From Hypanus sabinus (Eukaryota): a stretch of 64,000 nucleotides of DNA. Shown here piece by piece: positions 4,955 to 47,100 of the stretch (the first letter of the stretch is position 1; each line of letters opens with the position of its first letter). The stretch lies in NCBI RefSeq assembly GCF_030144855.1, contig NC_082730.1, forward strand, positions 14,570,001-14,634,000, written 5' to 3'. A program made the position numbers and the translations under genes. The notes below the pieces were generated by a model, which worked only from the letters and a program-made list of their open reading frames with translations, made no database searches and was not told the DNA's origin.

Positions 4955-5512
4955 GTCACTTTATTAGGTACACCTATTCATCTGTTTGTTAATGCAAATA
5001 TTTAATTAGTCAGTCATGTGGCAGTAATACAGTCCATATGAACAGACCAATATAGTCAAGAGATTCAGTGTTCAGGCAATCAGAATGGGGGGGGGGGGGA
5101 ATGTGATCTTAGTGACTTTGATCGTGGAACGATAGTTGACGCCAGACAGGAAGATGTGAGTATCCAAGAAACTCTTGATACTGTGGGATTTGCACATACA
5201 ACAGTCTCTAGAGTTTGCAGAGAGTGCTGACGAAAACAAGAAAGTATCCAGTGAATGGGAACTTTGCGAGTAAAAATGGCTTGTTAATGAGAGAAGTCAG
5301 AGGAGAGTGGCCGGACTGATTGAAGCTGACAGGAAGATGGCAAGAATTCAAATAACCACACATTATGACAGTGCTGAAGAACATTTGAAAAGACAATGTG
5401 TTAAAGCTTGAAGTGAGTGGGTCACAGCAGTAGAAAAACCCACGAACATACAGTGGCCACTTTATTAGGCATAGGAAGAACTGTACCTAATAAAGTGATT
5501 ACTGAATGGTTA
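4955..5512. mobile_element. Tc1-like non-autonomous element
   Basis: Inverted termini cactttattaggtac / gtacctaataaagtg; transposase 5' remnant. Confidence 0.7.
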
Positions 5513-5869
5513 AAGGCAGAAACTTGTGAGATATCCATCACATGTTCAGTGGCTTTGAGAGGAAAATGAAATTGTGAGTGGGTTCGGAGACCTGCCATAG
5601 AGAGGGAAGCATTTGGCACTGATGTTAATGCAGAGAGAGTGAGGGATGGACAGGGTCTGAATAAAAATCTGATACTCTGTCCTGAGGCTGAATTGGACGA
5701 GGAGGAGATTGCTGTTCTTCAGACACATCCATGAGATGGGCATTTCTCCATTCAGCAAATTTAAACCCAAGATCGGCACAGTGTCACTCCTCAGGACAAC
5801 TGATCCTTCACAGAGGAAACATGGATGAGACATTTAGTTCATTGAGAAATAAATCACTAAGAAACCTAC

Positions 5870-6194
5870 CATTAAATACTTGTAGATATACATTAAATAT
5901 TGGATCATGATTGATCTGTTGATGTAATTCCACAGCTGTACCATCCTGTATCTCCAGAGCTAAGATCATGCATAGTAACAGTAAATATTCCCCGTTCTGG
6001 GTTATCTGTGATTGACACTCGTCCACTCCGTCCGCGTTGCTCATTCGTTTCCACTAAAACTGAATGGTGACGAGTCCATCCATGGCACCAATACTTTGTG
6101 TGCGAGCGGTACTTTGCTTCATAGTGACAATTGATTGCGATTGCACTTATCACAACTCCTGTTACATGTTTCTCTGCCCTCAATGTACCTGAGA
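5870..6194 (-). pseudogene. Paralogue A IgV exon, frameshifted
   Basis: ccttccgcag|TCTCAGGT...AATG|gtaggt; 325 nt versus 321 in gene C. A 4-bp ATCA duplication (5908-5915) gives TGA at 5905-5907; the C' Cys is replaced by His. Confidence 0.9.
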
Positions 6195-8224
6195 CTGCGG
6201 AAGGCATTTTCAAATTTGAAGGGAAAGGAACAACTTAATGCAAAAAAGATATTTTTGAACATGAGATCAAAAACATGTCCAGATCACATTCAGCATGTTG
6301 ACCATAACACCACAGTCAATGGTTTTGGTCTGAAGTGCAGTCAGTGCTGTTACTGTGTCAGTGCTCTCTCCCCTGTGTCAGTACATTGTGGGTTCAATTC
6401 CCACGCCAGAGTCCTGAGCAGAAACCCAGGGTTATCTCCCATCTCACACCTCTCCCTCTCTCCTAATTATACTATCTCCCTCTCTGCTCAGACTTGATGC
6501 AAAGTCTTGACCCAAGTTGTTGACATTTCCCCTGCCCCTGACAGATGTTGCTTGACCCACTGAGTTCATCTAGAGTGTACTCAGAACTCCAGTTTCCCAC
6601 AATTTTAGTGTCTACAAGTATTCAAACTCTGTTCTGGAACTGGGGTTATGCCCCCAAACCAACACTGATTATGTGAAGTCCAGTGCAGGTTGTCACTCAC
6701 TGGATAGGAAACCAAGCAGAAGAATCAAAGTCCACAGCATTTTATTCACAGAGAACCAGCCAGGACCAATCTGTTCTCAGAAACCAATGACTAAAATAAA
6801 AATGAGGAAGAAGGCAGCAGGAGGTTAGATCAGAAAACCGCAGTGACCCGACTGGAATGTGGTATGTGACAATCAAAACACGTTTAGTTATATTAGCAAG
6901 AGAGAAACATTTAAACAGTTCCCAAAGACTGAACAAAAGAGTGAGCGGAGTTGAAATATTTGACCCAAGCAATAGCGAATGTTCTCATCTGAAGCAACAG
7001 TAAACGGCTGGAGCAGAGGATTAATCTGCAATGTCGACCACTCTGCCTCCACAGATCCCACCGGATTCCTTCAGATCTTTTTTTTATTTTTTGCTTGATT
7101 AAAATGTTAGCCATGATGAGTCACTGGGGAAAGTATTCATGGTCAGAAGTTAATAGTGGAAAGGGAACAAGTCCATGTTGAGTTTTGTGAGTGTGAATGG
7201 AAAGTTACATCACCCCTAGTCCAGACCACAGGAGCATTCGATGGCTCTGGGCTGGAGATTAGAAGAATGGGGGGAGTGGGGGGAAAGGTCTCATTGAAAT
7301 CTGTTGAATATTGAAAGGCCTAGATAGAGTGGATGTGGAGAGGATATTTCCTAAGGTAGGGGATTCTACAACTAGATGACACAGCCTCAGAGAACAAGGC
7401 CATTCCTTTAGAACAGAGACGAGGAAGAATTTCTTCAGACATAGGGTGATGTATCTGTGAATCCACTTCCACAGATGTCAGTTGAGGCCATGTCATTGGA
7501 TATATTTGAAATGGAGGTTGATAAGTTCTTGGTTATTAAAGGTGTCAAAGGTTATGGGAGAAGGTAGGTGAATGGGGTTGAGAGAGCCTAATTTTACACC
7601 TAAGCCTTTTGGTCTTATGGTCCTCTAATAAAGACACCAACCTGATGAATCTCTTCTGCTAAATGAATTTTTGAATGTTCAATGCTCGTCCAATGCCAGA
7701 AGTTCTCGTTATCACCTACCTTACCATCTGCCGCTGTTCCAAAACTCAGAGTTATGGACTTGTATCCCAAGGTCCGTACATTGTTCTAGACCTGCCTTGC
7801 TGATAATTCAAACAAACATGAGACACGTGAAAGACACCTGATAAATGGTCTTGGCCAGAAAGGACGACTGTTTACTGTTTTCCAAAGATGCTGCCTGGCC
7901 TGCTGAGTTCCTCCAGGTTTTTGTGTGTGTTGTGATCATTCTATCAAGCCTGTTTTTGGGAATTTGCTGCTGAGGAATGAGTAAAGTGGGAAATAGTTTT
8001 GATGTAGAAGGGGCTTTTCATGCACACTCAGCAGACGTACTTGGCTTCATTCCCTCTTCTCTCTGAAGACTGGTTCCACTATCTGAAGTAACTTTTAAAG
8101 CTCACCTCTTCTGAATTCTATTCCATCAATTTCAGGAGCTCTGACGGGATTTCACTTTGCGTCAGTTAGATGTGAGGGGAAACCAGTTGAATGGAGTTGC
8201 ACATTCTCAAGGGTAAAATCCGTA

Positions 8225-9950
8225 AAACCATAGATATAGGAACAGATTTAAGCCATTTGGCCCATCGAGACTGCTCCGCCATTTCATCATGGTTGATCTA
8301 AATTTTATGTTAGCTCCAATCTCCTACCTTCTCCTAGTATTTCTTCATGCCCTGACCAATCAAGAATCTCTCAACCTTTGTTTTAAATATACATAAAGAC
8401 TTGGCCTCCACAGCTGTCTGTGGCAAAAAAAATTCCACAGATTCACCACCCTCTGGCTAAAGAAATTCATCCTTGACTATGTTCTGAAACAACAACCCAC
8501 CCCCATTTTTAGGTTGAGTCTGCTGGTCTTTGACTCTCACACCATAGGAAACATCTCTAACTCTACTCTGTCAAGGCTTTTCACCATTTGATAGTTTTCA
8601 ATTTGGTCATCCCTTATTCTTCTGAATTCTAATGAATACGGACCCAGAACCAACAGACACTCTTCATATGAGAAGGCAATTAATCCTGTAAACTTTTATG
8701 TGAACCTCCTTTGATCCCTTTCCAATTTCAGCACATCCTTTCTTTGATAAGGGTTCTAAACCAGCTCACAATACTCCAAGTGAGGCCTCACCAATGCTTT
8801 ATAAAGTTTCAACATTACATCCTTGTGCTTATATTCTATTCTTCTTGAAATGAAAATTAACATTGCATTTGCCTTTCTCACCAGAGACTCAAGCTACAAA
8901 TTAACCTTTAGGGAATCTCACACAAGGACTCCCAAGTACCTTTGTGTCTCAGATTTTTGTATTTACTCTCCATTTAGAAAATGGTCAAATCTTTCATTTC
9001 TTCTACCAAAGTGTATGACCATACACTTCCCAAAACTATATTCCATCTGCCATTTCTTCACCCATTCTTCTAATGTGTTTAATCCCTTCTGTAGCCTCTC
9101 TACTTTCTCAAAACTACCTCCAACTATCTTCATATCATCTGCAACCTTTGCAACAAAGACTTCAAATCCATTCTCCAAATCATTGACATATAAGGTAAAA
9201 ATAATTAATCCCACACAGACCCCTGTGTAACACCATTAACCACTGGTAGCCAACCAGCATAGACTCCCTTTATCAACATACACTAAATACTGGAGGAACT
9301 CAGCAGGCCAGGCAGCATCTATGGATAAAAGCAGAGATGACATTTCAGGCCAAAACTCTTTGGCAGGACTGGAGAAAAATAATCTGAGGAGTACTCAGCT
9401 ACTCATCTGCACATTATCTCTTGTTTGTGATTTGAAGATTCCCTTTATTCCCACTCTTTGCCTCCTGTCAGTCTGCCACTGCTTTATCCATGCTAGAATC
9501 TTCCCTGTAATACCATGGACTCATAGCTTGTTAATCAGCCTCATGTGTGGTACCTTGTCAAAGTCCTTCTGAAAATCCATGTACATAACATCATCTGATT
9601 CTCCTTTGCCTAACCTGCTCATTATTTCTTCAAAGAATTCCAACAAATTTTTCAGGCAAGATTTTCCCTTAAGGAAACCATGCTGACTATGGACTATTTA
9701 ATAATGTGCCTCCAAGTACCCTGAAACCACATCTTTAACAATCAACTTCAACATTGTTCCAACCATTGAGGTCATTCCAAATGGCCTATAATTTCCTTTC
9801 TTCTGCCTCTCTCTATTTTCGAAGAGTGGAGTGACATTTGCAATTTCCCATTCCTTCAGAACCAATCCCGAAGCAACTTATTCTTGAAAAAGCACTACTC
9901 ATGTCTCCATAATTTCTTCAGACACCTCTTTCAGAACCCTGGCGTATGCT
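8225..9950 (-). mobile_element. CR1 LINE fragment
   Basis: LYVNDLE..KVADDMK..WQMEY; CR1 3' tail. Confidence 0.85.
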
Positions 9951-11730
9951 GTCTGGTCCAGGTGCTTTATTTACTTTCAGACCATACAGTTTCAGTAAGT
10001 GTTCAGTGATCATTTCAGTGTTGAGGTGACTGGTTCAGAAGCCTGATGGCTGCACTGTTGTTGAACCTGTTAGTTTGGGACCTGAGGCTCCAGTTCTCTG
10101 CTCGGCAACAGCAAGAAGACAGCATGTCTGGAAGATGTGGGTCCTTGATGATGGATTCTGCTCTCTTGTGGCAGGACTACTTTACAGATGTGCTCACTGG
10201 TGGGCTGGGCTTTACCTATCAGCTGATCAGATCAGTCTTAACCAACCTCCACACAGACCGTCCCTGAGTAATGAATGTGTCTGTTTTTACAGATGCCTAT
10301 AAGTCAATTTTACCCTTGTGTCAGAAAACACAACAAATATCTATACTTCCATGATACTGTAATGGAGAGCATCAACTGCAAATAAAACTGAGATGAAAGA
10401 GTAATTCTGAAAAGTGGAGCGAAAGAAAACCAGTTCTGTTATTTGTAGGAACAAAGAACACAGAACAGTACAGCACAGTACAGGCCTTTCAGCACAGAAT
10501 ATTGTGCCAATTTATACTTCATGATCAATCTAACCCTTCCCTCCTACACAGCACATCACCCCCTATATTCATACAAACATGTACGTGCATAACTAAGAGC
10601 CTCTAAATGTCCTTATTGAGTCAGCCTCTACCATCTTGCCTGCAGTGTTTTCAGGGACCCACCACTCTCAGTATATAAAAAAAAAACATCCTCTCAGCTT
10701 TTGTCCACTCACCTTAAATGGACGTTCTCTGGCATTGGTCATTGTCACCATGGGAAAGAGGTACTAGCTGTCCACTCAATCTATGCCTTATATTCCACAA
10801 TACTCCAAGTGTGATCGAACTGGAGGATTATTGATTTGCAACATTACCTTGTGGCTCTTGATCTCAATCCCTCAACTAGTGAAGCCCAGCACATCCTACA
10901 CCTTCTTTAACACCCTTACAACTTGCACAGCAATTTTGAGTTATCTGTGGACTTACACCCCAATATCCCTCTGTTCCTCCACATTGCTCAGACTCCTGCC
11001 ATTAACCTTGTAATTCAAGTTCACTCACCCAAAGTGTATCACTTCACATTTTTCTGTTAAGCTCCATCAATCACTTCTCCATCCAGCATTGCATCCTGTC
11101 TTTACCCTGTTGTGACTGATGACAAGGCTCTAGACCATCCACAATACCGACAATCTTCGTGTCACATGCAAACATTACTGTGCAGAATTCGCAGGCACAT
11201 ATCAAAATATTCTGTAAAGTGAAGATGCTTTCAAAAATAATGAAATGAGAAGTAAACAGTAAAAACAATAAATCAGGTCAATATTTGGTGAGACCATCCT
11301 TTGCCTTTAAAACTGCATCAATCCTCTTAGGTGCACTGTTGTGCCGTTTTGTAAGAAAATTATCTGATGGATCGCTACAGTTCTTCTTCAGACTTTGGCA
11401 GTTGTGCTTGCCTCTGAATCTCCAGATAATCTCAAAGAGCCTCAATGATGTTGAGCTCAGGGTGCTGTGGAAGTCATAGCTTCTGAAACCATATAAATAA
11501 ACCTACGACTTTAGCATAGTACTGTACATTGGAGTTTTGAATTCAATAATATTACTGAGGCTCATTCATTTGTAGATGTGTCTTTAAATCAGATTGTCAC
11601 AACCTGGGAATGAACTGAATTGTCTTTTATCCTACACAGCACTCAACTGACTGGATCTGCTCTTTAAAGCAACACCCTTCCACCTCTAAGCCAGATCTCT
11701 GAAGTGAAACTGAGGTTGATGAAAGGTTCT

Positions 11731-23734: not shown

Positions 23735-25000
23735 ATGGCACAGCCCTATTAGACTCCTGAGTTGATTGTGAAGGGCTCTGATTTATCACTATTATTGCTG
23801 AGCACTGTGGCTAACGTACCATCATGCAATAGTCTCAGTTTTTGTAAGCACTTGTGTTGATAATATATGCTAGAGAACTTTGCTTCCATTGTATCAAATG
23901 CCTTTGCAAATCTATTAAAGCTAAATACAGGGTTGCCTTTGTTGATGGCATTTTTTTTCCTTTTTTTGAGCATGCTGTGAAAATCATGTCTCCGCTACCT
24001 CCAGATGTGTGGAAACCATACTGTTATTCTGGGAGTACTTCTTCAGATAGCAGAAGGAGTCCATTGACAAGGATATGAGCAAGCACTTGGCATGTTGTTG
24101 ACTGGAGGAAGCTGCCTCTGAAATTGCCACAATCTGTCTTGTCTTCCTTTTTGAATATAGTCACTATTAAGAGTATCCCTGAGTCTGAGGACATTTGTTC
24201 CTTTTCCCAATTGATCAGTAGCAGGGCATGCATGCATGTGGTGCAGGAGTGCTGGTACTTCTTTGAGGATCTCTGCTGGGATGCAGTCAGAACGAATGCC
24301 TTTATTGCTTTTTGGGCTTCTGGTGGCAAAATGGACTTCCTTCATAATGGGAAGATCCCCTATGTCTTCTGTCACAGGTCTCTGGAGATTTGATTAGTAA
24401 GCCCTGATTCAGCAGCACTATTGCACTTAAGAAGTCCTTGAAAGTGTTCTCTCCATTGATTATTGATAATCTTTGAATATTTCAGCAAGCTCTTCCCATC
24501 CATTGAACATAAGGGTTTTAACCCACAGTCACTTGAACCATAGACTGCTTTGGTGGCACTGAAGAAGCCTCTGTCATTCTATGGATTTCCAGAGCTTTTT
24601 CAGTTCACTCTTTAGCTCCCGTACCTGTGATAGACATTGCTTTGGCTCTGGAGGAAGCTTCTCCTTTGACCTTGCTGCTGATGTCATTCTGCTAAGCACA
24701 AATGCTTTCATTTTCTTGGAGATAAGTTCATCTATCTCCATGTCATTATCATCAAAACAATCCCAATGTTTTCTGAACTTTTAACCAAGGATGCTTTTTG
24801 CAGACATTGTTCTTCGATATCCTCTGGATATGCCTCTTGGAGCTTTTCCCTAAATGATACCTGATGGTACTGTTGGGTGGCAGTGTCAACCAGGTACTCA
24901 TGTTTTAGCCATGGACCGGTCTGCTTCTTATGAACCCTCCTCTTTTCCATGAGCCTGATGGATGTTGTGCTATAGATCAGCTGACCATCTGTCTAACAGT
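23735..25000 (-). mobile_element. RTE-clade LINE remnant
   Basis: KSNKGIRSDCIPAEILK, IVTIFKKEDKTDCGNFRG, SEPFTINSGV. Further RTE bits at 19150-19380 (ELLYADD) and 46830-47125. Confidence 0.75.
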
Positions 25001-29403: not shown

Positions 29404-32400
29404 AAGTAATGTGTGTTTTTCAACAAATGAAGACATTCTCACATGTTAACGTTCTCACTGTTCAGTATGGGTACAGAGAGACTGTGGAAAAACTATGGCA
29501 CTGATGCTCCATTGGTGCAGCTGCTCTGTGCAACTGGGGAGAGCTCTGCACTGTACCCCGTCATGTTGATGGGCTCAAACCTGCCTCACACAGGAAACTG
29601 ATCTCCAAATCTCAAAGGGAAAACTGTGGGCTGAGAACTTATAGCAGCAGGAAATCTGCTGGTTACTGATTACATTGAAGTCACAGTTAAATTTATTTTT
29701 GCCTTATATGACCTTTAAATACAGAGTGTCTCTGGCCAATCATGATGGTTTTTCTTCTCTCTCCCTGTACCATAATGATTCATCTCAGGGAACTTCTAAG
29801 TTTAACACTTCTGTGTGTTTGGTTTCTCTTCTCCCAGAAGCAGATTGACTTACTGTGGCTTTATGAGGCACCTTTCAGACTGCACTAGTATTGTGAACAG
29901 TTTTGGGGCCCTCATCTAAGAAAACATGTGCTGGCATTGGAAAGAGTCCAGAGAACGTTCATTGGGATGATTCCAGTAATTGAAAGGTTTAATGTATGAG
30001 GAGCCATTTGATGGTTCTGGGCCTGTACTTGCTGGAGATCAGAGGAATGAGGGGAGATCTTATTGAATATCCAAATACTAGATAGACATAGAGAGAGTGG
30101 ATGAGGAGAGGAAGTTTCCCCAAGTGATTGTCTAGGACCAGGGTTTACAGCCTCAGGATAGAGAGGTGTCTTGTCAGTGCTCTCTCTCCTGTGTCAGTAC
30201 ATTGTGGGTTCACTTCCCACTCCAGAGTCCTGAGCAGAAATCCAGTGCAGTCCTGAGGGACTGTAGCAGTGTTGAATGTTCAATTACTTCAGATCACGTC
30301 AAACTTTCAAATGTACAGAGAGATACCAACTATTTAATTTGGGATACTCCCAAATCTGTACGTGTGTCTCAGATTTCATGGAACTCGAAGGTTGAGATGG
30401 GGATCAGTAGGATTATTTGAGCCCAATATCCTGACTTCCTTCTCACCTACAGACCAATTTATTAGCTCCAGAAAGAAATCCCTCATGATGTCTGAAACTG
30501 TGCCCTCTGGTTTTGATGGAACTTATATAGGATTTTACTTGTCAAGTATTTCTCTGTGTAGTAAAAAGATGCTGCTACAGTGGTCATTTCCACTTTAGTG
30601 CCCAGATCTGCTCTCTTCAGCAACTACTTTACCATCTCACTCTATTCCAAATTTTGGGGAGTTATGGACTTACATCCAAAATTTGTACATTGTTCTGGAT
30701 CTGCCTTGGTGATAATTCAATCAAACCCTTTTTTTTGGGGGGAACTTGCTACTGAGAAAGGAGCAAAATAGGAAATAGGTGTGATGTAGAAGGGGCTTTG
30801 CATGCAAACTCAGCATACAGTATTTCACTTCACTCCCTCCACTCTCTGAAAGCTGTGTCCACTCTTTGAAGGAACCTTTAAAGCTCATCTCTTGTGAATT
30901 CTATTCCATCTGTCAGTGCAATTTCAAGACCTCTGATGGGATTTCACTTTGCTTCGGTTTGATATGAGGGGAAAACCTTGTGAATGGAATTGCTCGTTTG
31001 CAATGGGTAAAATCCATGTCAGATCTGTTCTTAAACCTTATCAACTCCATGTTGACAGAAAATGGTGAGTGTGAGTAGAAAGGCCCTGCATGTTCTATTT
31101 CTCATAGAATCACAGGGCACAGTAAATGGACAGGTCACACTTGTCCAAAGGGAAGACATTTCTGTCTTAACTATCTCACCCCCATGGTCTCCCTAACCCT
31201 TGACCCTGTAAACCTTTGCACAGAATTTCAGTTGCTAACTTCCCTACATTCCTGTTCACCTGGTTGGAACTTTCAATGTTAGTCAACATGTGATTCATCC
31301 AGATTCATGCCCGGAGCAGATGAAGCCTGCAGTGAGTTTCAGTGCAAGGGATAAAAATTCTCACATATTGGAGAAGTGATACAGAATCAGAAATAGTTTC
31401 AATATGACTGGCATATTGAAGCAGCCCAATGATTCCCATTTGAACTGTTCACAGATTCATCAATTATCAGTGCCATCTTGAAGTTTAACTAAAAAATGTT
31501 AATTGTTCAACCTTGATTTCATTGTAAACACGAGAAGATCGGCTGGAAACCCAAAGTGCAGTCAGAAAATGCTGGAGGAAATCAGCAGGTCTGACAGCAT
31601 CTTTGAAAATGAACAGATAGTTGACATTTTGGGCCAAGATGTTCAATGCAACCTTTCAGACCTTTCTTCAGGACTGAGAAGGAAGGGGGGATACGTCTGG
31701 ATAAAAAGATGGGGAGGGGAAGGAGGCTGTCAGGAAGGTGATTGGTGAAACAAGGTTGGTGAGAAAGATCAAGGGGTAGAGAAGGTATCTAAGAGGAGAG
31801 TAGAGTGGACATTGGAGAAAGGGGAGAAGGAGGCATCCGAGGGGAATGTAACAGACAGGCCTGAAACCTTGACTATCTGTACATTTCCATAGATGCTGCC
31901 TGACTTGCTAAGTTGCTCCAGAATTTTTTTTGTGTTGCTTTTGATTTCACAGTAGTGTGGGGATAGGGGGGTGGGGTTGAGGTGATCCAACTTTATATTT
32001 TCCTTAATTTTTGTTGCTGACTTTGCAATTGTGTATAAGCACTTAATTTCACGTAGTATATAAACCGGTCAATGACAAAATCATTCTGAATACATAGCGA
32101 GCTTTTGTTACTTTGGGTTTGTGCAGTATATTAGCTTATTTCTGCTTTATTTCTGTACATTGTATAGTAAGAGTGTGGTCTCTGTTGTGACAGTCACTGC
32201 TGTCATCTGTGTAATGTTCACCCTCAGTGAAGGATGTGGTTAGAACTTCTGCCTTCTTCACTTCTCCTAGCAAACAGAATATAGAGAAGTACCAATGGAT
32301 ACTATGTATAGGCAGACTGTTCTAGTCTCCTCCTGCATTGGCCCATCACTTCTTGGAAAACTTCTGAACAATCGTGGTTCAATATGCAGATGAGAATAAG

Positions 32401-35528: not shown

Positions 35529-37724
35529 GTCTAGGGGAAACCATTGTCTGCCACTAAACCGTGCCTCACGTTTGCATATAGAGATGCTGTGTATGCACCC
35601 CAGCACAAACCCGCAACATAAAATATCAGGCAGTACACAATGTGCGTTTGAACGATCACACTTTATGAATTTTACTGTAACTATGGATTAGTAGAGAAAT
35701 AAAAATATAAAATAAAAAGACGCCAAAAATAGAAACTATACAGTTAGTGCTCATGTTGGAGCACACACAATATCCTCGGTCCACCATTCAATTTCCTCCA
35801 AACTGCACGACCCTCGGACAGGGACCAACCCGCTGTGGTCTATCAGAGCACTTCCCGCACGTCCTCCCTCTTCACTTCTCCTCGCCGAATTTCCCATGCA
35901 TCAACCCCAGATCCCACACATACAGATAGAATAACAAGACTCCCATTGGCTAGTCCCCCCATTATCAGTAGTTATAACCCACACATTTCAGCTACAGAGA
36001 AAATTGCCTCATTGTTTCAATGTGAGTATTATTAACAGTAAGTTAATACTAATCAGGAAGATATTGGTAACAAGCGGCTGGTTCTGGGGTTGGTGGGGGG
36101 CTTTACCTCCGGTGTGCATTGTTTGTAGTTCTACCACCCATGCCGCACGAGGTACCTGAAAGCCTCTGTATTGTAAATATCATTTGCCGTCCCAGATAAA
36201 GATGCTCTTTTGGCCATAAAATTGTCTAGTGGTCCTTTAGTAAAGTAGAAGTTACCACAGATTTCTGGCAACGAGGTGAACTGGTTTTGTGGATGTGTCG
36301 GCACGTTTCGAACAGGAGTTGCGCGGGGATGAGGAGCCTTGCATTTCGGATGGCTACGTTCAGGACAATCGGTGAATTTGTGGAGCAAAACGAGGACTGG
36401 CTGGAGTATGAGGAAAGGTTGGGACACGTTTTCTGTGCTAATGGAATTACTGAGGAGGCTAAGAAGTGCTCTATTCTCCTGAGTGTGTGTGGGGCAAAGA
36501 CTTACAAGCTGATAAGGAACTTAGCCATGCCGCAGAAACTGGGGGAAATTCCATATGACGAACCGGTCAAGCTCATGGGGAACCACCACAATCTGAAACC
36601 TTCAGTGATAGTCCAACAGTTCAAGTTTCACAGCCATTTCAGGAAGCCAGGTCAGTCTGTGGTCAATATTGTGGTTGAGCATTGCGATTTCGAAGCCGTG
36701 TTGGATGACCTGCTCTGTGACAGATTAGTATGCAGCATTAATAATGACGCCGTACAATGCCGCTTGTTGGGAGAAAGCCCACCGTTGACTTAGAGATTGC
36801 CCAAGGCATGGAGCTGGCTGCTAATAATGCTAAGGATATCCAGAAAGGACATAGGGGGGTTGCAGTCGGCAGTCAGGAGGGAGACTGGTAAACAGGCAAA
36901 GCGGGTGGAAATGTTTTTGGTGTGGAGGGATGTACTATGCAAATATTTGCAATTTCAAAGTTACTGTCTGCCATGCTTGTAGCAAAAAGGGACATTTAGC
37001 TAAAAAGTGCAGGAGCATAAAGGGCAAGGTTAAGCCTGGGCAGGGGAAAGCTCAGCAGATTCAGGCAGCCTCACACCACCTAGCAGAAGCAGACGAGGAG
37101 GCAGCGTGTGCCTACAACATGTTTGGTGTGGAAACGGATGAGGGACCACCTGAATCTTATTATGCCACAGTCACTGTTCAGGGAATGGACAAAAAAGTTC
37201 AAGATTGATTCAGGGACTATTGGATTGGTCATTAGTGAAGAGACCTACAGGAGGACATGGGGGTCCAACCTGCCTTCCATCAGACCGTCTAAGCGCAAAC
37301 TCAGGACCTATACTGCGCAGCCCATAGGGGTGTTATATGTGGGTATTTCAGCCGGGGTTCAGAAGGCTGAAGCCAGGCTGGTGATAGCTAAGGGCAGTGG
37401 GCCCAGTCTTTTGGGCCACGATTGGCTTCACAAAATTCGCCTCAACTGGCACGAAATTAAGTATGCACACATGGCGGAGGACATTCTGCAGCGGTATTGT
37501 GACGTTTTCAGGACGAGCTGGGTGCACTGAAGGGCGTGACCGTGAAACTCCATGTTGACCCTGAGGCCACACCACGTTTTTTTAAGCCCAGGTCAGTGCC
37601 CTTTGCCATAAAAGGCAAAGTCGAGGAGGGGCTGGAATGTTTACAGGGGATGGGCATCATTGAGCCCATCCAGTTTTCAAGGTGGGCAGCTCCCATTGTT
37701 CCAGTTTTGAAGGCAGACAAAACG

Positions 37725-38705
37725 CTTGTTGCAGTGTATGACGAACAAGAGGCGCAGTGTGCAGATGAATTCACTGATGGCAATGTGAGTGACAGACATA
37801 GTCCAGACACATTTGAGAGTGAGCTCACAGCACAGCTTGTGGCTTTTCAGCCTATTACAGGAGAAACTGAAGTTACCCCCTCGGCACTGAAAGCCAGCAA
37901 GCCACTTCCAGTACAACAAAGCAGTGACCCAGCTCTGGTACCACCTGCCCAGTTCCAGCAAGGTGCATCTCAGCCTGATGGTCCCACCAAACGGAATCTG
38001 CATGTGAAGCTATCATAACAGTAGCAAATGGGGCACCCACAGACAATATAAGAACAGAGCCTCCAGGACCACCAGACAAGCATTCAACAAGCACTCTAAG
38101 TGATTTGACAAAGAAGGTAGAATTTTCTGGAGATGGTAGCCCCCTGGGAATCCATGTGATGCCATTTAACTCTATGCTGACTGGAAGATTCCTTGGCCTG
38201 AGTATTTGTTGTATTGAAGAGAACCTGCTCCAGGAGAATGAATGTATCAGTGACTGTGATTTAACAGTCAAGACCTTTGTTCAAGCACAAGAGGTTTTCC
38301 GAAATGCATTGCAATTTCCTGCTGTTGAACTCCAGGTAGTTCCAGGTTATACCAAGGAACTCTATGAAAAATTTGTGATTTGGTCTATTCTGAGCCATGG
38401 TCGTGACAATGATTCAAAAACCAAACAACACACATAAAATGCTGGTGCAACACAGCAGGCCAGGCAGCATCCATAAGGAGGAGCACTGTCGATGTTTTGG
38501 GCCTAGATCCTTCGTCAGGACTGACAAAACTCTTTAAATTCAAAAACCAAAGTTCCTTCTTCAGTGGATTCCAAGCCAGGTGGCAAACCTGCAGATGCCA
38601 TTTATCCCAAAAATGCTGAGAATAGCTTGCCACTGATTTCAAAGAAGCTCAGTTGTCCAAAACAGTTAAGGAGCAATGACTGCTTAATGCATACCAGGAA
38701 AGCAT
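37725..38705 (+). pseudogene. PARD3B: Intronless PARD3B fragment (post-PB1 region, PDZ1, start of PDZ1-2 linker) captured inside a Gypsy element
   Basis: LVAVYDEQE..DRHSPDTFESELTAQLVAFQPITGETEVTPSALK..SSDP and TLSDLTKKVEFSGDGSPLGIHVMPFNSMLTGRFLGL..ENECI..DLTVKTFVQAQEVFRNAL..YEK..DSKTKVP closely follow PARD3B as I recall it. One frameshift near 38010; small in-frame deletions; the 3' end is approximate. Confidence 0.9.
38426..38551. mobile_element. Short retroelement tail (Penelope-like or SINE) inserted in the captured PARD3B
   Basis: 14-bp TSD ATTCAAAAACCAAA at 38412-38425 and 38538-38551; similar sequence at 46060-46240. Confidence 0.75.
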
Positions 38706-41659
38706 GTCCACCAGTGACTTTGCCAGAGGGAGAGAAGCTGGCAGAGGGGTCGGGGAGGATGGACATTCTCACACGGACACACAGACCCCGCTCATGTCCT
38801 GAACACTAAACATCCTCACCAGCGGTGCCTGCTGGGTCACCGGGGATAGTGCGTAGATTGCAGCACCCTCGCAAACCACCTGACAGACTGAATCTTTGAT
38901 TGGATAACTTTTTTTGTTGTTAGATTGAATGTTGAATTTGCCACGGTTTTTAGGTGTTTTATATTGGTAACCTGTTGCTAATGAGACCACTGTTTTTATT
39001 TCATAGTTCATCTATATTTGGGGAAGGTTGGATTTTAAAGGGGGAGAAGTGTTGTAATGTCAGTATTATTAAAAGTAAGTTAATAGTAATCGGGAAGCTG
39101 TTGGAAACAAAAGGCTGACTCCGGAGTTGGCGGGGTTTTTTATTTCCGATATTCATTGTATGTAGTTCCACCACCCATGCCGCACGAGGTACCTGAAAGC
39201 CTCTGTATTGTAAAGATCATTTGCCAGATAAAGATAAAAATTGTCGAGTGATCGTTTTGTAAAGTAGAAGTTACCACACTCATAGTTAACATTATAGAGA
39301 AGCCATTTCATTATAACACGATAGAGAGGCCATTTTATAATTAGCAGTTAACAGTTAACATTACAGTTAATATTACTGAGAGTCCTACGTTCCCTCCCCA
39401 CCGAATTTAGTCATGCCCTCATGATATTCAGATAATTTGCCAACCCTTCCTGCAAAACACAGAGCCCAATCCAAGTGCAGAAAGCAGTGACATAACTCCC
39501 CAAAACAGTAGAGATCACACCCTGCTCCCCAGGCGCTACATAGGCCAACCTCTCCGGGGGGGAGGGGGTTCCTAATCCTCTGAGACCTCTGTCACCCCCC
39601 CTTTCCTAGCTCCTCCGGCTCAGACACTACTGGAGCCACTTTAGGGCTACCTGGCAAAACCTCCTATGATCTGTCACTCAAGCCCCTCTGCAACTTGAAG
39701 CCCCTGCCTCAGCTTCCGGCCTCCCGCCCTCTACTCCAGAGTCCAGCTGCACTCCCTGTTGCAAAGCAAAACCCTGTTGCACACCTCACCTCACCTGACG
39801 CAATGGGAGAAGGGCCTGGAGCCTCTTCCTCCGTCACGGGGAAGTTAGCGAACGGCAGCATGTACCACACATCCGAATCATCATCCTCCAAATCAGTGTC
39901 CTTTCCTGGGGTTGGGCCGGCCCAGACTGTTTTGCAGTGTGCTCTTCCATCACCCCACACTTCCGCAGAGTCCTCGTACTAGGTGTAGACTCCAAATCGG
40001 GTTCCAGGTCTACCTGCACCTCTTGTCCCAGAGGCAACAGGTGGTTCCGATGAAGTATCTTGACAAGCTCCTTCCTGTCCTCGAACCTCACCGGAAAAAC
40101 TGGTAGGTTCAGCATCTGACTTTCCACCACACAGGGTGTGGCCACCCAGCGGTCAGCCAACTTGTGCTTTCCAGGTAAACCCAAATTCCTTATGAGGACT
40201 CGGACTCCCAGCAGGAGCTGGGAGAACTTCACTTTATGGTTATGCCTCCTCTTATTTCCCCGATTCTGCTTGGTGGCCACCACCCCTGCCAATTCATACG
40301 CCCTTTTCAGCTCTCTCCTCATATCAGACACATACTTCAGATAATGCTTTGGCAGTATGTCACCCGAGTCAGTCCCAAAACAGGGGTCAATGGGCAACCT
40401 CGCCTCGCGCCCAAACATCAGATAATAGGGCGAATACGCAGTAACTTCATTGCGTGTACAGTTGTAACTGTGAACCAGATGCCCAATATGTTGACTCCAT
40501 CTGCTCTTTTTACTGATCTCCAGAGTCCCGAGCAGGTCTAGCAAGGTCCGATTAAACCTCTCAGGGTGGGGATCGCCCTGCGGATGATAGGACGTGGTCC
40601 TCAATTTCTTAACTCCCAGCATGCACAGTAACTCACAGATGAGCTTACTCTCGAAATCCTGTCCCTGGTCACTACGTATCCACCGGGGAAGGCCGTAATG
40701 CACAAAAAACTTCTTCCATAACATTTTTACCAATGTAGTCACCCTCTAGTCCTTGGTAGAAAAAGCCTTAGCTTATCTAGTGTAGTGGTCCGTGATGACT
40801 AAGACATTTGTGTTGCTGACATTGGGCCCTGTGGACAGAAAATCCATACACACCAGGTCTAGGGGCCCTGCACTCTGCAAGTGTGACAGAGGAGCGGCCT
40901 GCACAGGCAGCGTCTTCCGGCGTATGCAGCGAATGCACGACTTGCAGTACACTTCAACTTCTGACCTTATTTGGGGCCTGTCTTTAAGAAATCCATAGGC
41001 CCTCTCCACCCCCAAATGTCCAAAATCATCGTGCAGTGATCTTCAACGCAATCTGCTGATACTTCTCAGGCAGGACCAACACCGAGGTTGGTCCGGGGTG
41101 ACGTTACCCAGTATAACATTTGTTTCTTCAACTTCAACCGAGGCCATTCCCTCAGTAATAGAGGCACTGAAGCGTGTTTTGGCTTCTCCACACATGCCAT
41201 TTACCCCTTTTCCACCGCGCACTAAGTAGCACCAATGCCTGGGTCATCTCGTTGGGCAGCTGCTACTTCCACTGGATTTAATTCTGGCAGCTGCTTGGTC
41301 TTTAGAGCAATCAGGTCACAGTAAACTGGGGGTAGGGCATCATCAGAAGCCCCCAATGGGTCCACTGCTTGGTCTGGCCTCTCCTTTTCCTCGGCCTTCA
41401 CAGTGATAGCAAACAGACACAAGGCTTTCACACCAGGGGCAGGAACGCTCTCCCACTCCTAGTCCCTCTCCGGTTCCTCATGCATCCATCGGGACAAAGC
41501 GTCTGCATCGACATTCCTGCACCCTGGACGGTACTTCAGGCTGAAATCATTTACCGACAAGGCCACCAACCACCAATGGCCTGTAGCATCCAGTGTTGCC
41601 GAGGATCAGGATGTAAGTGAGTGGGTCGTTGTCTGTCCTTGCCTCAAACTTGGCCCCAT

Positions 41660-44105
41660 TGATGCACCATCAATAACTCACTCTGAGATGTGAAGGCGAG
41701 ATATCGGCTTTTATTGACTGGAAGAAGGAACAAGCAGTGAGTGACCACCATACTACATCCTGGAGACTGAGAGGCCGTGCTCCGGCCTCAATCGCCTATA
41801 TACAGGGGTCTGAGGGAGGAGCCGCAGGAGCAGTCAGCAAGGGGTGTGTCCAGACAGGTATACATAGTTCACCACATTCAACCCCACTTTGTTTTAAAAA
41901 GAGTCCCCATGTGGCAAAGATTCTTACAGGTTAAGTCTATCAGGTGGTCAAATCTGTTGCAGCAATCTGCGTAGCACCGGCTGTGATTGCACAGGTGCCG
42001 GTGGTGGTGATTGCACCGGAGACAGAGGTTGTGCTGGTTGCGGCCTTACTGGAGGTGTCAGCCCACTAGGCGTCAGTGATCCCTCATGCATTTGCAAGGC
42101 GCCTGGTATATACGCGGATGAAACGCCTGGTATATGAGTGTCATGAGGAGTCTGTGTAGGGCTCGGTGTGCACGGTGTCACCTCGGGTACAGGGTTCATA
42201 GTTACCGGGGAGTGTTCGGGGTAGTGGTCTGCTGCTCCCGCGGGCGCCAGATCGCAGACGGAGACCGTGTCCTCCCGCCCATCAGGTAAGACCACATAAG
42301 CATACTGGGGGTTCGCATGTAGAAGGTGAACCCTCTCGACCAGCGGGGAGTATTTATTACTCCTCACATGATTCCAGAGCAGCACTGGCCCTGGGGACCT
42401 CAGCCAAGCTGGTAGGGTGGTCCCAGTGACAGACTTCCTGGGAAAAGAGAATAGGCGCCCGTGAGGGGTGGTATTGGTGGACGTACATAACAGGGAGCGG
42501 ATAGAGTGGAGTGCCTCAGGCAGGACCTCCTGACATCGAGAGACCAGCAACCCTTTTGACTTAAGGGCTAAAAGTGTGGCCTTCCAAACTGTGGCATTCT
42601 CCTTCTCCACCTGTCCATTTCCCCGGGGATTATAACTCGTGGTCCGACTAGTAGCAATGCCCCTAGCTAGCAGGTACCAGCGCAGCTCATCACTCATAAA
42701 GGAGGACCTTCTATCACTGTGGATATAGCTGGGATATCCGAACAGACTGAAGAGCTGGCGCAGGGCTTTTACGATGGACGTGGTAGTGGTGTCGGGGCAG
42801 GGAATGGCAAAGGGGAACTGCGAGTATTCATCGATAATATTGAGAAAATAGACATTGCGGTTGGTGGAGGGAAGGGGGCCCTTAAAGTCAACACTCAGTC
42901 GCTCAAAAGGGCAGGTGGCCTTGACAAGTTGTGCCGTGTCAGGACGGTAGAAGTGCGGTTTGCACGCAGCGCAGATTTGGCAGTCCCTGGTCATCGCCCT
43001 GATGTCCTCCAGGGAGTATGGCAGGTTCCGGGCTTTCATGAAATGGTAAAATAGGGTGACCCCCGGATGGCAAAGATGTGCATGAAGGGCTTATAGCTGG
43101 TCAAGCTGTGCACTAGCACACGTTCCCCGGGATAGGGCATCAGGGGGCTCATTGAGTCTGCCAGGCCGGTACAGGATGTCAAAGTTTTAGGTGGAGAGTT
43201 CTATTCTCCACCGCAAAATTTTATCATTTTTGATTTTGCCCCGCTGTTGGTTGCTGAACATGAACGCAACTGAGCGCTGGTCGGTCAGCAAGGTGAACCT
43301 TTTGCCGGTGAGATAGTGCCTCCAGTGCCTAACAGCTTCCACTATGGCCTGGGCTTCTTTCTCCACCGTGGAATTTCAGAGCCCTGAAGGGTACGAGAAA
43401 AGAATGCTACTGGCCTGCCTGCCTGATTGAGGGTAGCAGCAAGCGCGAAATCGGAGGCATCTCTCTTTACTTGGAAGGGAATGGTCTCGTCCACCGCATG
43501 CATCGTTGCTTTGGCAATGTCCCCTTTAATGCAGCTGAAGGCCGCGCAGGCCTCAGCAGAGAGGGGGAAAGTGGTAGACTTGACCAGGGGGCGGGCCTTG
43601 TCTGCATAATGGGGGACCCATTGGGTGTAATAGAAAAAAAAACCCAGGCACCGCCTGAGGGCTTTGAGAGTGGTGGGAAAAGGAAGTTCTAACGGGGGTG
43701 CATACAGTCGGGATCAGGGCCAATGACCCCGTTTGCCACGACATACCCAAGGATAGCGAGTTGGGTGGTTCCGAACACACACTTGCCCCTGTTATACATA
43801 AGGTTCAGAGCTTTGGCCACCTGGAAAAATTGTTGGAAGTTGGCATTGTGATCCGACCAGTCGCGACCACAGATGGTGATGTTATCCAGATAGGGAAATG
43901 TGGCCTTCAGTTGGTACTGGTCCACCATCCGGTCCATTTCCCTCTGGAAAACCGAGACACCATTTGTGACACCAAATGGGATGCGCAGGAAGTGATAGAG
44001 CCTGCCGCCCGCCTCGAAGGCGGTGTAGGGGCGGTCCTCTGGGCGTAATGGGAGCTGGTGATAAGCGGATTTCAGATCAATTGTTGAGAACACCTTGTAC
44101 TTGTG
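41660..44105 (-). mobile_element. 5'-truncated Gypsy (RT, RNaseH, integrase, 3' LTR 41660-41876) nested in the outer element
   Basis: ORF 41948-43039 is integrase (DFKGP..D..E); RT IDLKSAYHQ..YLDN; purine tract adjacent to the LTR. Confidence 0.88.
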
Positions 44106-47100
44106 ACTCACTTTGGCATAGGCCTTCATGAATCCTTTATAATAACCACAGAACCCCAAGAACGAGCGCAGAGTGCTCACAGTCTGGAGCCTCGGCCACG
44201 TGGTCACTGCTTCTATCTTAGCCAAGTCTGTAGCTACTCCATCCCATGAGTTTATGTGCCGTACATAGCTAATAGACATCTTGCAGAACTGGTACTTGTC
44301 TGCTCTACCCATGTCTCATAATCCTCTTCACCTTCACGGGTGGGTGTTATCCCAGAGAAAGATCTTATCTTCTGGCGGGGCCCCTCTGCCTTTCTCACCA
44401 GGAAGGCAACTCAGAACTCTCACCGTTCGCTGGGGGACGGGAACTAACCAAATTTTCCAAATCTGACCACTCCTTCCCTTCATCCCACAGTACCGAGAGG
44501 ATTCGTTCCCTAAGATCCCCTCCCTCATCTGCTGGCGACTCAGCTCACTGAGCTCCGGCCCCTCACTCCCCGACAATTTGTACGCGCCATGGTTCCGCCT
44601 CCGGGGACGCCAGTCTCCTCTGAAAACTCCACCCCTCTTATGTCATTTGTGTGTGTTGCACTATATCTGTACCTGTCTCAAAATCAAAGTTCCGCGATAC
44701 AATCTCCACTTTGCCAACAGTTTTAACCCCAGTCAAACCTTGAAGTAACACTTCATCTGATACCCTCGTCTCCACCCCCCTCAACATGCACGTTTTGCTT
44801 TCTGCCACCCTCACAGCTGCACGCCATCACGGAAATGCGGCTGTCGCCATCCAAACTGTACTTTGAGCCAAGCGGCCACACAACATGTACAGAATTCAAT
44901 CACCAGACAAGCACCCCGCAAATGTAGCACTCAGCTCTATCAGCCCACATTCGTCTAGGGGAAACCGCCGTCTGCCCGCCAAACTGTGTCTCACTTTTGT
45001 GTAGATGCTGTGTAATGCACGCCAGTACATAAAATATCAGGCAGTACACAATATTACTTTGAACAATTACACTTTATAAATTTTATTGTAACTATGGGGT
45101 TAGTAGAGAAACAAAAATATAAAATAAAAAGGCGCCAAGAATAGAGATTATACAGCTTGTGCACACGTTGGAGCTCACGCAATATCCTCGGTCCACCATT
45201 CGATTTCCTGAAAACTCCACGACCCTTGGACAGGGACCAACCCGCGGTGGTCTACCAGAGCACTTCCTGCACATCCTCCCTCTTCACTTCCCCTCGCCGA
45301 ACTTCCCGCGCACCAACCCCGGTTCCCACACATACAGATAGAATAACAAGACTCCCATTGGCTAGTCCCCCCTGATAGCAATAGTTATAACCCAAGCATT
45401 TCAGCTACAGAAAAATTACCTCATAGTTAGTATTACAGAGAAGCCATTTTAAAATTAGGTTAACAGTTAATATTACTGAGAACCTTACAAACACAATATA
45501 ATCAATCAAAACTACACACAAAGACTGACAAATTACCAATCTGTAAAGGAAAGCAAACAGTGCAAATACCCCCCTCTATACCATCCACAACACCGACAAT
45601 TATCATGTCATATGTAAACATATGGACATACAATGGACTTTTGAATGAAGTACCATTACAGAGGCTTGTTCATATATTGAAGTGTCCATAAGTCAGGTGT
45701 TCATAACCTGGGAATGAACTGCATAGTCCTTCATCCTACACATTATTCCTTGGAGCAGATCTGCTTCACAACTGACACTCTTCCACTTTTAATCTACATT
45801 TGAGGAGGGGTCCCTGACTGGAAACTGAGCTCAATCAAGGATCTAGGCCTGAAATATCGAACTATTTACTCCTTTCCATAGATGCTGCCTGATTTACTGA
45901 GTTCCTCCAGCATTTGTATGTAGAGAATCAGCATATCGGAGAAAGATTGAAAATCTGCCTGAATGCTGTCACAACTATCTCTCACTGAACATTATCAAAA
46001 CCAAAAGCTGATGATTGACTATAGCAAGAAGTATCCTGATATTCTTGACAACAACACACACAAAATGCTGGTGGACCACAGCAGACCAGGGAGCATCTAT
46101 AGAGAGAAGCGCTGTCGACATTTCAGGCCGAGACGGTCCGATGTCTCGGCCCGAAACGTCAACAGCGCTTCTCCCTATAGATGCTGCCTGGCCTGCTGTG
46201 TTCCACTAGCATTTTGTGTGTGTTGTTGTTTGAATTTCCAGCATCTGCAGATTTCCTCATGTTTGCTGATATTCTTGATCCAGTTCACATCAGGACAATA
46301 TCTCCACCTACCATAATGCAATCATGACAATTTTTGTGAAAATCTACTTTTTTAAAAATTCTCTTCCCATGAAAAAAAGCATTCTATGTATCCATCCAAG
46401 ACTGTTAAAAATATAAATGGCAAATGTTTAGGGAGAATGAGAAATATTTAAAAGGGGAAACCTCTTCATTAGAAGATTGTACATATATTGAACACGCTGT
46501 GGTTAGGGAAGACTCAATAGCAACATTTAAACGACAGTGGACAGCTCTCTGGATAGGGAGGGTTTAGTGAGATATGGGCCAAATGCAGGTGAATGTGTTT
46601 AGCTTACATCAACATCTTTCTCAGAATGGTGGAGTTGGCATGAAGGGCTTCTTTTTGTGCAGTACTGTACTCCACTCTATTATGCATTTGAGCTCTTGTT
46701 ACAGGTCAGCATTGAGAAAAGAATCTCCTAAGATTTGCAGATTGACCATTGCAACTCACAACAATATACAACTCACTCATTTTAGTGGTGTGAACACTCG
46801 AGTCGAGTAAGGTGTTCTCCAAAGGGGTTGTCTATTTCTGAGTCCTCAGGAGGATGGAGACGCGAGTCAGTGATCCATATATTCTGCTGCACGTGGGCAA
46901 GACTAAGTGGTGCCTATGGTTAGGTGCTGGGTCTCGTGGTTGTTCATTTCCTCCTTTTGCAGCTGCAGCTTGTTCCCTGAGGCACCACGGAGGTTGCTCT
47001 CATATAATGCATCTCCTTCTTGAACAGATTTCCTCCCAGTGCATCCAGTGAATGCAACATCTTCCCAATTTTTAGATGTAATCTTGAATTTCTTCAGTCT

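Follow-up and report, generated by a model that had tools for sequence, protein, structure and literature searches.

How did coding sequence of the host gene PARD3B come to lie, without introns, between the two long terminal repeats (LTRs) of a retrotransposon? The question is raised by a stretch of 64,000 nt from the stingray Hypanus sabinus (NC_082730.1, positions 14,570,001-14,634,000, forward strand), hereafter the window, within which all coordinates below are counted. One LTR element spans positions 36013-39278 (3.27 kb). It is very probably a decayed, non-autonomous Ty3/Gypsy-type LTR retrotransposon which transduced part of a host PARD3B mRNA. An earlier reading of the same DNA, made from its letters alone (the sequence-only reading), had described a complete LTR element in which PARD3B cDNA replaces pol; the two LTRs, the primer binding site, the polypurine tract and the 5-bp target-site duplication that it listed were all found where it had placed them or a few bases away.

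An LTR element that integrated as one unit

The features of the element are given below with the evidence for each. The comparisons involve a related Gypsy element (L001) and two annotated stingray proteins, P0121 from Hemitrygon akajei and P0184 from H. sabinus, which are described further on; RT stands for reverse transcriptase.

36008 to 36012, plus strand: left copy of the target-site duplication, CTCAT, read directly; the uninterrupted paralogous target has a single CTCAT at 45420-45424
36013 to 36259, plus strand: 5' LTR, 247 bp, TGT...ACA, a direct repeat with 39050-39278
36266 to 36278, plus strand: primer-binding-site-like TGGCAACGAGGTG, starting 6 nt past the end of the 5' LTR; L001 has TGGCGACGAGGAT at a like place
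36350 to 37150 (3' bound approximate), plus strand: gag with a CCHC zinc knuckle, broken; weak Pfam zf-CCHC match, tblastx match to the gag of L001, 59% identity to the gag part of P0184
37150 to 37480 (approximate bounds), plus strand: aspartic protease, broken; 77% identity to the protease part of P0184, alignment with the protease ends of three relatives (P0002, P0003 and P0010)
37480 to 37724, plus strand: linker between protease and RT and the first ~75 RT codons, ending ..VLKADKT; protein and DNA homology
37725 to 38690 (3' bound ±~15 bp), plus strand: PARD3B-derived spliced segment, broken, with one nested short dispersed repeat; protein homology and absence of introns
38690 to 38899, plus strand: low-complexity stretch, then a probable pol (integrase C-terminal) tail ending ..RRLQHPRKPPDRLNL-stop, broken; PPDRLNL-stop motif and position
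39037 to 39049, plus strand: polypurine tract AAAGGGGGAGAAG, abutting the 3' LTR; L001 has a similar tract and LTR start
39050 to 39278, plus strand: 3' LTR, 229 bp, TGT...ACA, a direct repeat with 36013-36259
39279 to 39283, plus strand: right copy of the target-site duplication, CTCAT, read directly and compared with the paralogous empty site

The 5' and 3' LTRs are each other's best match, with 197 of 229 aligned bases identical (86%, 18 gap columns, Kimura two-parameter distance 0.155). The assignment of the LTRs, primer binding site and polypurine tract is corroborated by L001, which has similar signals at the same positions: TGGCGACGAGGAT lies one base past its LTR, and a similar purine tract is followed by a TGT..GTA LTR start. 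Scans of the element region for RNA features gave no Rfam family and no tRNA. Since the two LTRs of the window element have diverged, the insertion is old, roughly 25-80 million years at an assumed, unmeasured rate of 1-3 x 10^-9 substitutions per site per year.

An uninterrupted paralogue of the target (44953-45481), 9.4 kb away, carries CTCAT once: the left flank of the element can be aligned with it up to position 45424, and the right flank from position 45420. Because this target has a single CTCAT, the two CTCAT flanks go beyond a chance match. The paralogue acts as an internal empty site, and therefore the whole 3.27 kb entered as a single unit with a 5-bp duplication. The chimera at 36013-39278 itself integrated as one unit, as the sequence-only reading had held. 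The region is repeat-rich and nested, so that one may think of a mis-assembly, or of two unrelated truncated elements flanking a PARD3B pseudogene. Such an arrangement is extremely improbable: the duplication and the empty site bracket the entire 3.27 kb, the LTRs are mutual best matches, the 64-kb window has no runs of N, and the same fusion is found in the annotations of Hemitrygon akajei and Hypanus sabinus.

The carrier is recognizable from what remains upstream of the PARD3B segment. The open stretches encoding gag, protease, the linker and the RT start are spread over the three plus frames, and with K02A2.6-like elements gag, protease and RT start share 66-80% identity. In P0184, the protease part weakly matches Pfam gag-asp_proteas (E 0.0035, below the curated cut-off). 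The stretch 37503-38015 has 208 protein matches, all of them limited to the first ~43-60% of the query; many of these proteins have Pfam RVT_1 or retroviral-type protease domains, and some are named K02A2.6-like. L001 shows the gene order of Gypsy elements, with RT, RNase H and integrase after gag and protease. The window element has no RT core, RNase H or integrase, and the order RT-RNase H-integrase is not found in it. Because just ~75 RT codons and a short pol tail remain, it is a non-autonomous Ty3/Gypsy-type derivative, not an autonomous member of the group. The identities to K02A2.6-like elements and the gene order of L001 agree with the earlier attribution of the carrier to Gypsy.

L001 lies at 5481-10468 of an unrelated contig, from ENA ERZ25072196. 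Its 296-bp LTRs are 100% identical, which indicates a recent insertion, and between its RNase H and integrase regions a tandem duplication of 139 bp is seen (8472-8749). Of the fetched relatives of the carrier, the closest one, with protein P0003 (79% identity over the RT start), is present on 19 contigs of the collection; the four that were fetched, Logan contigs L004-L007, stem from four different sequencing runs (SRR29002623, SRR29002616, SRR31094510 and SRR29002607). In contrast, the collection yielded no contig with the PARD3B chimera.

The passenger sequence was identified with the stretch 37979-38434, which was scored against 1.8 billion representative proteins. The best match (82% identity, E 3e-62) is XP_072896921.1, that is P0121, a protein of 345 amino acids annotated as 'partitioning defective 3 homolog B-like' in Hemitrygon akajei, the red stingray. 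Next come amphibian and bony-fish PARD3B proteins, with ~50% identity over residues ~190-320 (E 1e-20 to 1e-17). The matched proteins which bear the name PARD3B have ~1200 amino acids, with a Par3 N-terminal domain and PDZ domains; sawfish PARD3 scores much lower than the PARD3B proteins. Similarly, the upstream stretch can be aligned with axolotl PARD3B from residue 75 (57% identity over 84 residues). In terms of the protein, the captured segment spans residues 75 to ~375 of PARD3B; it takes in the final part of the N-terminal domain, PDZ1, the linker that joins the two, and a further linker which reaches as far as the first strand of PDZ2. Once the nested repeat is subtracted, ~0.83 kb derive from PARD3B, close to the ~0.85 kb of the sequence-only reading. 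No other PARD3B exons were found in the 64-kb window, which is thus not visibly the source locus.

Pfam searches with each open stretch did not detect a PDZ domain. Since the Pfam PDZ models also miss PDZ1 in genuine PARD3B, the missing match is no evidence against PARD3B. Sequence searches of the PDB with pieces of the window and with P0121 gave no match. A profile match in the PDB was considered as evidence for PDZ1 and set aside as uninformative, as it involved solely PDZ2 columns from longer homologues. The AlphaFold2 model of P0121 has a pLDDT of ~90 over residues ~121-231, and all the top matches of this model in a Foldseek search of the PDB are PDZ domains, including PDZ1 of Drosophila Par3 (5oak, TM-score 0.80). 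The PDZ fold is therefore predicted from the intact sister protein P0121. The earlier statement that the PARD3B-like sequence covers PDZ1 stands for the region, which is present and has its best PARD3B matches at the position of PDZ1; the domain of the window copy itself is damaged by two short in-frame deletions.

Junctions of the PARD3B segment and its proposed origin

The homology to retroelements and the homology to PARD3B meet between positions 37724 and 37725, with no gap and no overlap. On the retroelement side, the protein alignment of the RT start with P0004 (79% identity) ends at residue 74 of the open stretch, i.e., base 37724, and the DNA homology to L004, the closest relative fetched (72% identity), stops at 37723. 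After ..KADKT, ARICGDYK.. and the remainder of RT follow in the relatives, and this is where the window departs. On the other side, the alignments of three Par-3 family proteins from three species all begin at base 37725, which is residue 75 (residue 91 in the protein with a 16-residue extension). The truncated RT and PARD3B are in one open frame, KADKT/LVAVYDEQE (the slash marks the junction), as had been noted from the letters.

The exon structure of PARD3B was taken from the loci of two bony fish, L002 and L003, by protein-to-DNA alignment. In L003, residues 75-137, 201-229 and 228-271 are encoded at 9998-10168, 23799-23885 and 24528-24659, with gaps of 13.6 kb and 0.6 kb. The segment is covered in L002 by six exons, spread over ~22 kb (12038 to ~34590), the last of which ends ..DLKK/G before the PDZ2 exon. 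Five intron positions of fish PARD3B thus fall inside the window segment, which is colinear with the genes and has no introns. The stingray sister genes are also single-exon genes (1038 bp for the 345 residues of P0121, 1389 bp for the 462 residues of P0184). In passing, the PARD3B gene at L002 10001-34011 (GCA_003711585.2) is split into two gene models, an annotation artefact, and the model P0163, the 5' part of this gene, reads into an intron past the exon ending ..KKE.

In both fish genes, a polypyrimidine tract and an AG immediately precede the codons for L-(M/V)-A-V: the exon starts ..cccctttttt-ag/CTG ATG GCT GTG in L003 and ..tctcttcc-ag/CTG GTG GCC GTG in L002. The window junction reads ..AAA ACG/CTT GTT GCA GTG, with L-V-A-V at 37725. 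Judged from these two genes, the 5' junction appears to coincide exactly with the codon that opens a PARD3B exon. The comparison with PARD3B genes that had been proposed for locating exon junctions therefore bears out the claim of an intronless PARD3B sequence in place of pol and adds an exon start at the 5' junction. An in-phase junction on the first base of an exon is what splicing produces, and it is very unlikely to arise by random recombination. The position of the junction thus suggests that an RNA was spliced from within RT to PARD3B, the splicing itself being deduced from that position.

The 3' end of the segment is less sharp. The similarity to PARD3B is lost after ~38681-38705, and the 3' junction can be placed within that range. 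The first ~130 bp past the junction, a low-complexity coding sequence, gave no significant alignment, L001 included, and the alignment of the pol tail with L001 is not significant either. The tail frame ends ..RRLQHPRKPPDRLNL-stop (PPDRLNL-stop), 150 bp short of the 3' LTR. The same end is seen in the pol of the neighbouring element (..RRLLQQI-stop-PPDRLNL-stop), and the pol of L001 ends with a similar basic motif, RRSSRSRK..P.RY, 80 bp before the LTR. On the basis of this shared motif and of its position, the 3' end of the chimera appears to be a pol tail. In P0121, a single frame leads out of PARD3B into the stretch which goes on to PPDRLNL-stop in the window, so that the fusion, as first formed, would have kept the frame at its two ends. 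The claim of a passenger in frame with a pol tail is thus supported: the tail is there, and P0121 reads into it.

A LINE (long interspersed nuclear element) might also account for intronless host sequence in such a place, if a processed PARD3B retrocopy of its making had entered pol in a complete Gypsy element and deletions had afterwards eliminated what was left of pol. Vertebrate genomes contain many processed retrocopies, and nested insertion does happen here, as a short dispersed repeat with its own duplication inserted later into the PARD3B part. However, there is no run of six or more A in 38600-39049, and no word longer than 6 nt is shared by the two flanks of the PARD3B part. The poly-A tract and the separate flanking duplication, which the sequence-only reading had named as signs against its own account, were looked for and are both missing. 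Moreover, the 5' end appears to be an exact exon start in frame with RT, the frame continues from the 3' end into the pol tail, and the gag-protease-PARD3B architecture recurs in the annotated copies of Hemitrygon akajei and Hypanus sabinus. A LINE-made insertion is therefore very improbable.

The transduction of a spliced PARD3B mRNA, the preferred reading, may be pictured as follows. An autonomous element would have been inserted, in sense orientation, in the PARD3B intron that precedes the exon starting with the codon for L75, and a transcript started in its 5' LTR would have run on into PARD3B. A splice within RT, after the ..KADKT codon, to the acceptor of the L75 exon, followed by the normal splicing of the later exons, would have given an RNA with the structure R-U5-primer binding site-gag-protease-truncated RT-PARD3B (residues 75 to ~375), in one frame. 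By analogy with the capture of oncogenes by retroviruses, the pol tail, the polypurine tract and U3-R may have been regained by a template switch of reverse transcriptase to a co-packaged RNA of a normal element. The 3' junction most likely arose in this way, by a switch of templates while the RNA was being reverse-transcribed, which is what the classical retroviral model holds. Lacking an RT core, RNase H and integrase, the chimera would have been mobilized in trans: with all its cis signals, it would have been copied and integrated by the proteins of autonomous relatives. The window copy landed in the LTR of another retroelement, making the 5-bp duplication.

Several observations weigh against this origin. 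At the junction point, the bases that follow are GC (in an Ala codon) in the close relatives and AT in L001, not GT, and no GT splice donor, canonical or cryptic, was found at the junction in the relatives examined. The donor would therefore have been non-canonical (a GC-AG event) or specific to the progenitor. The exon boundary is that of bony-fish PARD3B genes, not of the host's own PARD3B. At the other end, the 3' junction lies within ~10-25 nt of the end of the exon that precedes PDZ2 in other vertebrates. The primer binding site TGGCAACGAGGTG was matched to no tRNA. No further copies of the chimera were found among predicted proteins, and the searches gave no other open reading frame (ORF) across the RT/PARD3B junction; this suggests a low copy number, decayed unannotated copies being invisible to searches of predicted proteins. 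Finally, the case for amplification consists of one proven integration and two sister copies, and the three copies could include orthologues.

The missing GT donor counts in favour of a route without splicing into PARD3B, in which both junctions would result from non-homologous template switching of RT on a co-packaged mature PARD3B mRNA and the coincidence with an exon start would be due to chance. A switch between RNA templates packaged together is accepted as a way in which chimeric LTR elements arise (PMC13317346). It is nevertheless an unlikely source of both junctions, as a random landing on the first base of an exon in a coding mRNA of ~3.6 kb has a chance of ~1 in several hundred, and the match to the exon start is exact against three proteins and two gene structures.

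The opposite proposal is that both junctions were made by splicing, in one read-through transcript of two sense-oriented element copies, one in the intron before and one in the intron after the captured exons. The transcript would have been spliced from RT of the first copy to these exons, and from the last of them to the integrase tail of the second copy. It would account for a segment that starts at an exon start, ends near the end of the exon preceding PDZ2 (..DLKK/G) and keeps the frame at both junctions. It is rather unlikely, however: the conserved exon end ..IDLKKG is unrecognizable at the 3' junction in all three copies, and two copies of the element are required in the right introns and in the right orientation.

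Sister copies, decay and surrounding repeats

As the annotated proteins show, the same chimera is present in at least two dasyatid stingray genomes, those of Hemitrygon akajei and Hypanus sabinus. P0184 is the product of H. sabinus LOC132405607, a single-exon gene with one ORF of 462 codons; it consists of a C-terminal part of gag, followed by the protease and then directly by PARD3B up to the middle of PDZ1. P0121 starts at the same methionine, at the end of the protease. Both lack ~86 codons that are present in the window, namely those of the linker between protease and RT, of the start of RT and of the five initial PARD3B residues. This makes the window form the ancestral one, and the in-frame deletion common to P0121 and P0184 a derived state. 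Public annotations list both as protein-coding genes, P0121 as 'PARD3B-like' and P0184 as 'uncharacterized LOC132405607'. Such annotated derivatives of the chimera could mislead gene-family counts by inflating the Par-3 family.

P0121 and P0184 are 86% identical in the linker and 82% in PDZ1, and P0184 is altered at positions that are invariant in Par-3 proteins. Because PDZ1 is not better conserved than the linker and its invariant positions have changed, there is no sign of constraint on this domain. It could be supposed that the gag-protease-PDZ1 fusion was, or is, a working protein, either co-opted by the stingray host or used by the element; the stingray ORFs of 345 and 462 codons stay open and are annotated as genes, and in the variant of use by the element the fusion might bring particles to the Par-6/aPKC polarity complex. 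If this were true, the exon-precise 5' junction would also preserve, in a vertebrate genome, the natural trace of a gene capture that a Gypsy element made through splicing. A working fusion protein is quite improbable, and no evidence was found for a function of the chimera, oncogene-like or other.

The window copy is clearly decaying, in a neutral manner, since its integration. In gag there are two frameshifts together with at least one premature stop; a single frameshift separates gag from protease, and another separates protease from RT. The PARD3B part has one frameshift, the two in-frame deletions in PDZ1 and one nested insertion, a dispersed repeat of ~0.1 kb with its own duplication and internal stops. 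The tail has two frameshifts relative to P0121. With a total of ~seven frameshifts and LTRs that are ~15% diverged, the description of the copy as decayed by frameshift and stops is borne out.

Further copies of the short dispersed repeat that interrupts the PARD3B part lie in the window at 1942-1996, 7887-7933, 9274-9322, 31889-31947 and 45837-45921, and an inverted pair at 46050-46133 and 46144-46227. The matches between copies extend over ~50-110 bp, with 74-87% identity. The nested copy, the one that was scanned, has no Rfam family match.

The chimera is itself nested in another element. It lies in the downstream LTR-like repeat, a direct repeat of ~0.5 kb, of a minus-strand retroelement which occupies 35529-45481. 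The copies of this repeat (35529-36012 plus 39279 to ~39381, and 44953-45481) are ~85-90% identical. The host element has an RT (43689-44312), an integrase core (41948-43039) and an ORF of 302 codons (39834-40742) with no Pfam match; its pol has an in-frame stop just ahead of PPDRLNL-stop. Its gag and protease seem to be missing, as no more than ~640 bp separate the upstream repeat from RT.

Parallels and significance

Host-gene capture by LTR retroelements is textbook knowledge for the acutely transforming retroviruses. In classical oncogene transduction, the 5' junction results from read-through or splicing and the 3' junction from a template switch. The anatomy of the window element matches that of these viruses: spliced host exons lie between LTRs, the genes of the element are partly replaced, and the fusion is in frame with gag-pol; the chimera is replication-defective and helper-dependent and has a normal target duplication. 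Unlike these viruses, however, the carrier is a germ-line Ty3/Gypsy retrotransposon of a cartilaginous fish and not an infectious virus, and the passenger is a linker-PDZ1-linker fragment of a scaffold protein, with no known growth-promoting activity and no sign of selection on it. The resemblance to retroviral oncogene transduction that had been proposed from the letters thus holds for the anatomy, no oncogene-like function being in evidence.

LTR-driven chimeric transcripts which splice into downstream host exons are also known, and so are LARD and TRIM elements, which have cis signals without enzymes and are mobilized in trans. The window element resembles both, with an LTR transcript that would have been spliced into host exons and a mobilization in trans without enzymes of its own. 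Unlike the known chimeric transcripts, the one proposed here itself became a heritable, re-integrated element.

Among the closest known cases are those of crocodilian endogenous retroviruses, which have captured host mRNAs, namely that of KIT-ligand and that of nectin3, the latter replacing env (PMC4299795). As in these viruses, a germ-line LTR retroelement of the window has an intronless host coding sequence, with copies common to related species, and, as in the nectin3 case, the host sequence came at the expense of a gene of the element (PMC4299795). On the contrary, the crocodilian viruses carry complete host ORFs with reported purifying selection (PMC4299795), whereas the stingray element has an internal fragment, in the frame of a polyprotein, which is decaying.

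The transduction of gene fragments by LTR retrotransposons is frequent in plants, where numerous cases have been described (PMC13317346). Like maize Bs1 and other plant elements, the window element is non-autonomous, keeps gag-like sequence and has host-gene fragments in a hybrid ORF (PMC13317346). It differs from them in belonging to an animal (batoid) lineage, in having a single passenger, and in having a 5' junction that is precise to an exon boundary. In the searchable literature, few captures of host genes by LTR retrotransposons of animals were found, and no report of the capture of PARD3B or of host-gene capture by a Gypsy element of batoids.

Host-gene transduction by LTR retroelements as such is known, and the window element differs from the known cases by the Gypsy carrier in a cartilaginous fish, the PARD3B fragment as passenger and the exon-precise 5' junction. 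The locus keeps the whole anatomy together: the cis signals, the junction at an exon boundary, the in-frame fusion to a polyprotein and an internal empty site which serves as a control. Because all of this is preserved in one place, the locus bears directly on how chimeras of this kind form, by splicing at the 5' end and recombination at the 3' end. If the proposed origin is right, as is very probable, it is a rare animal example of a retrotransposon that acquired a host gene as retroviruses acquire oncogenes, with a well-preserved record of the mechanism.

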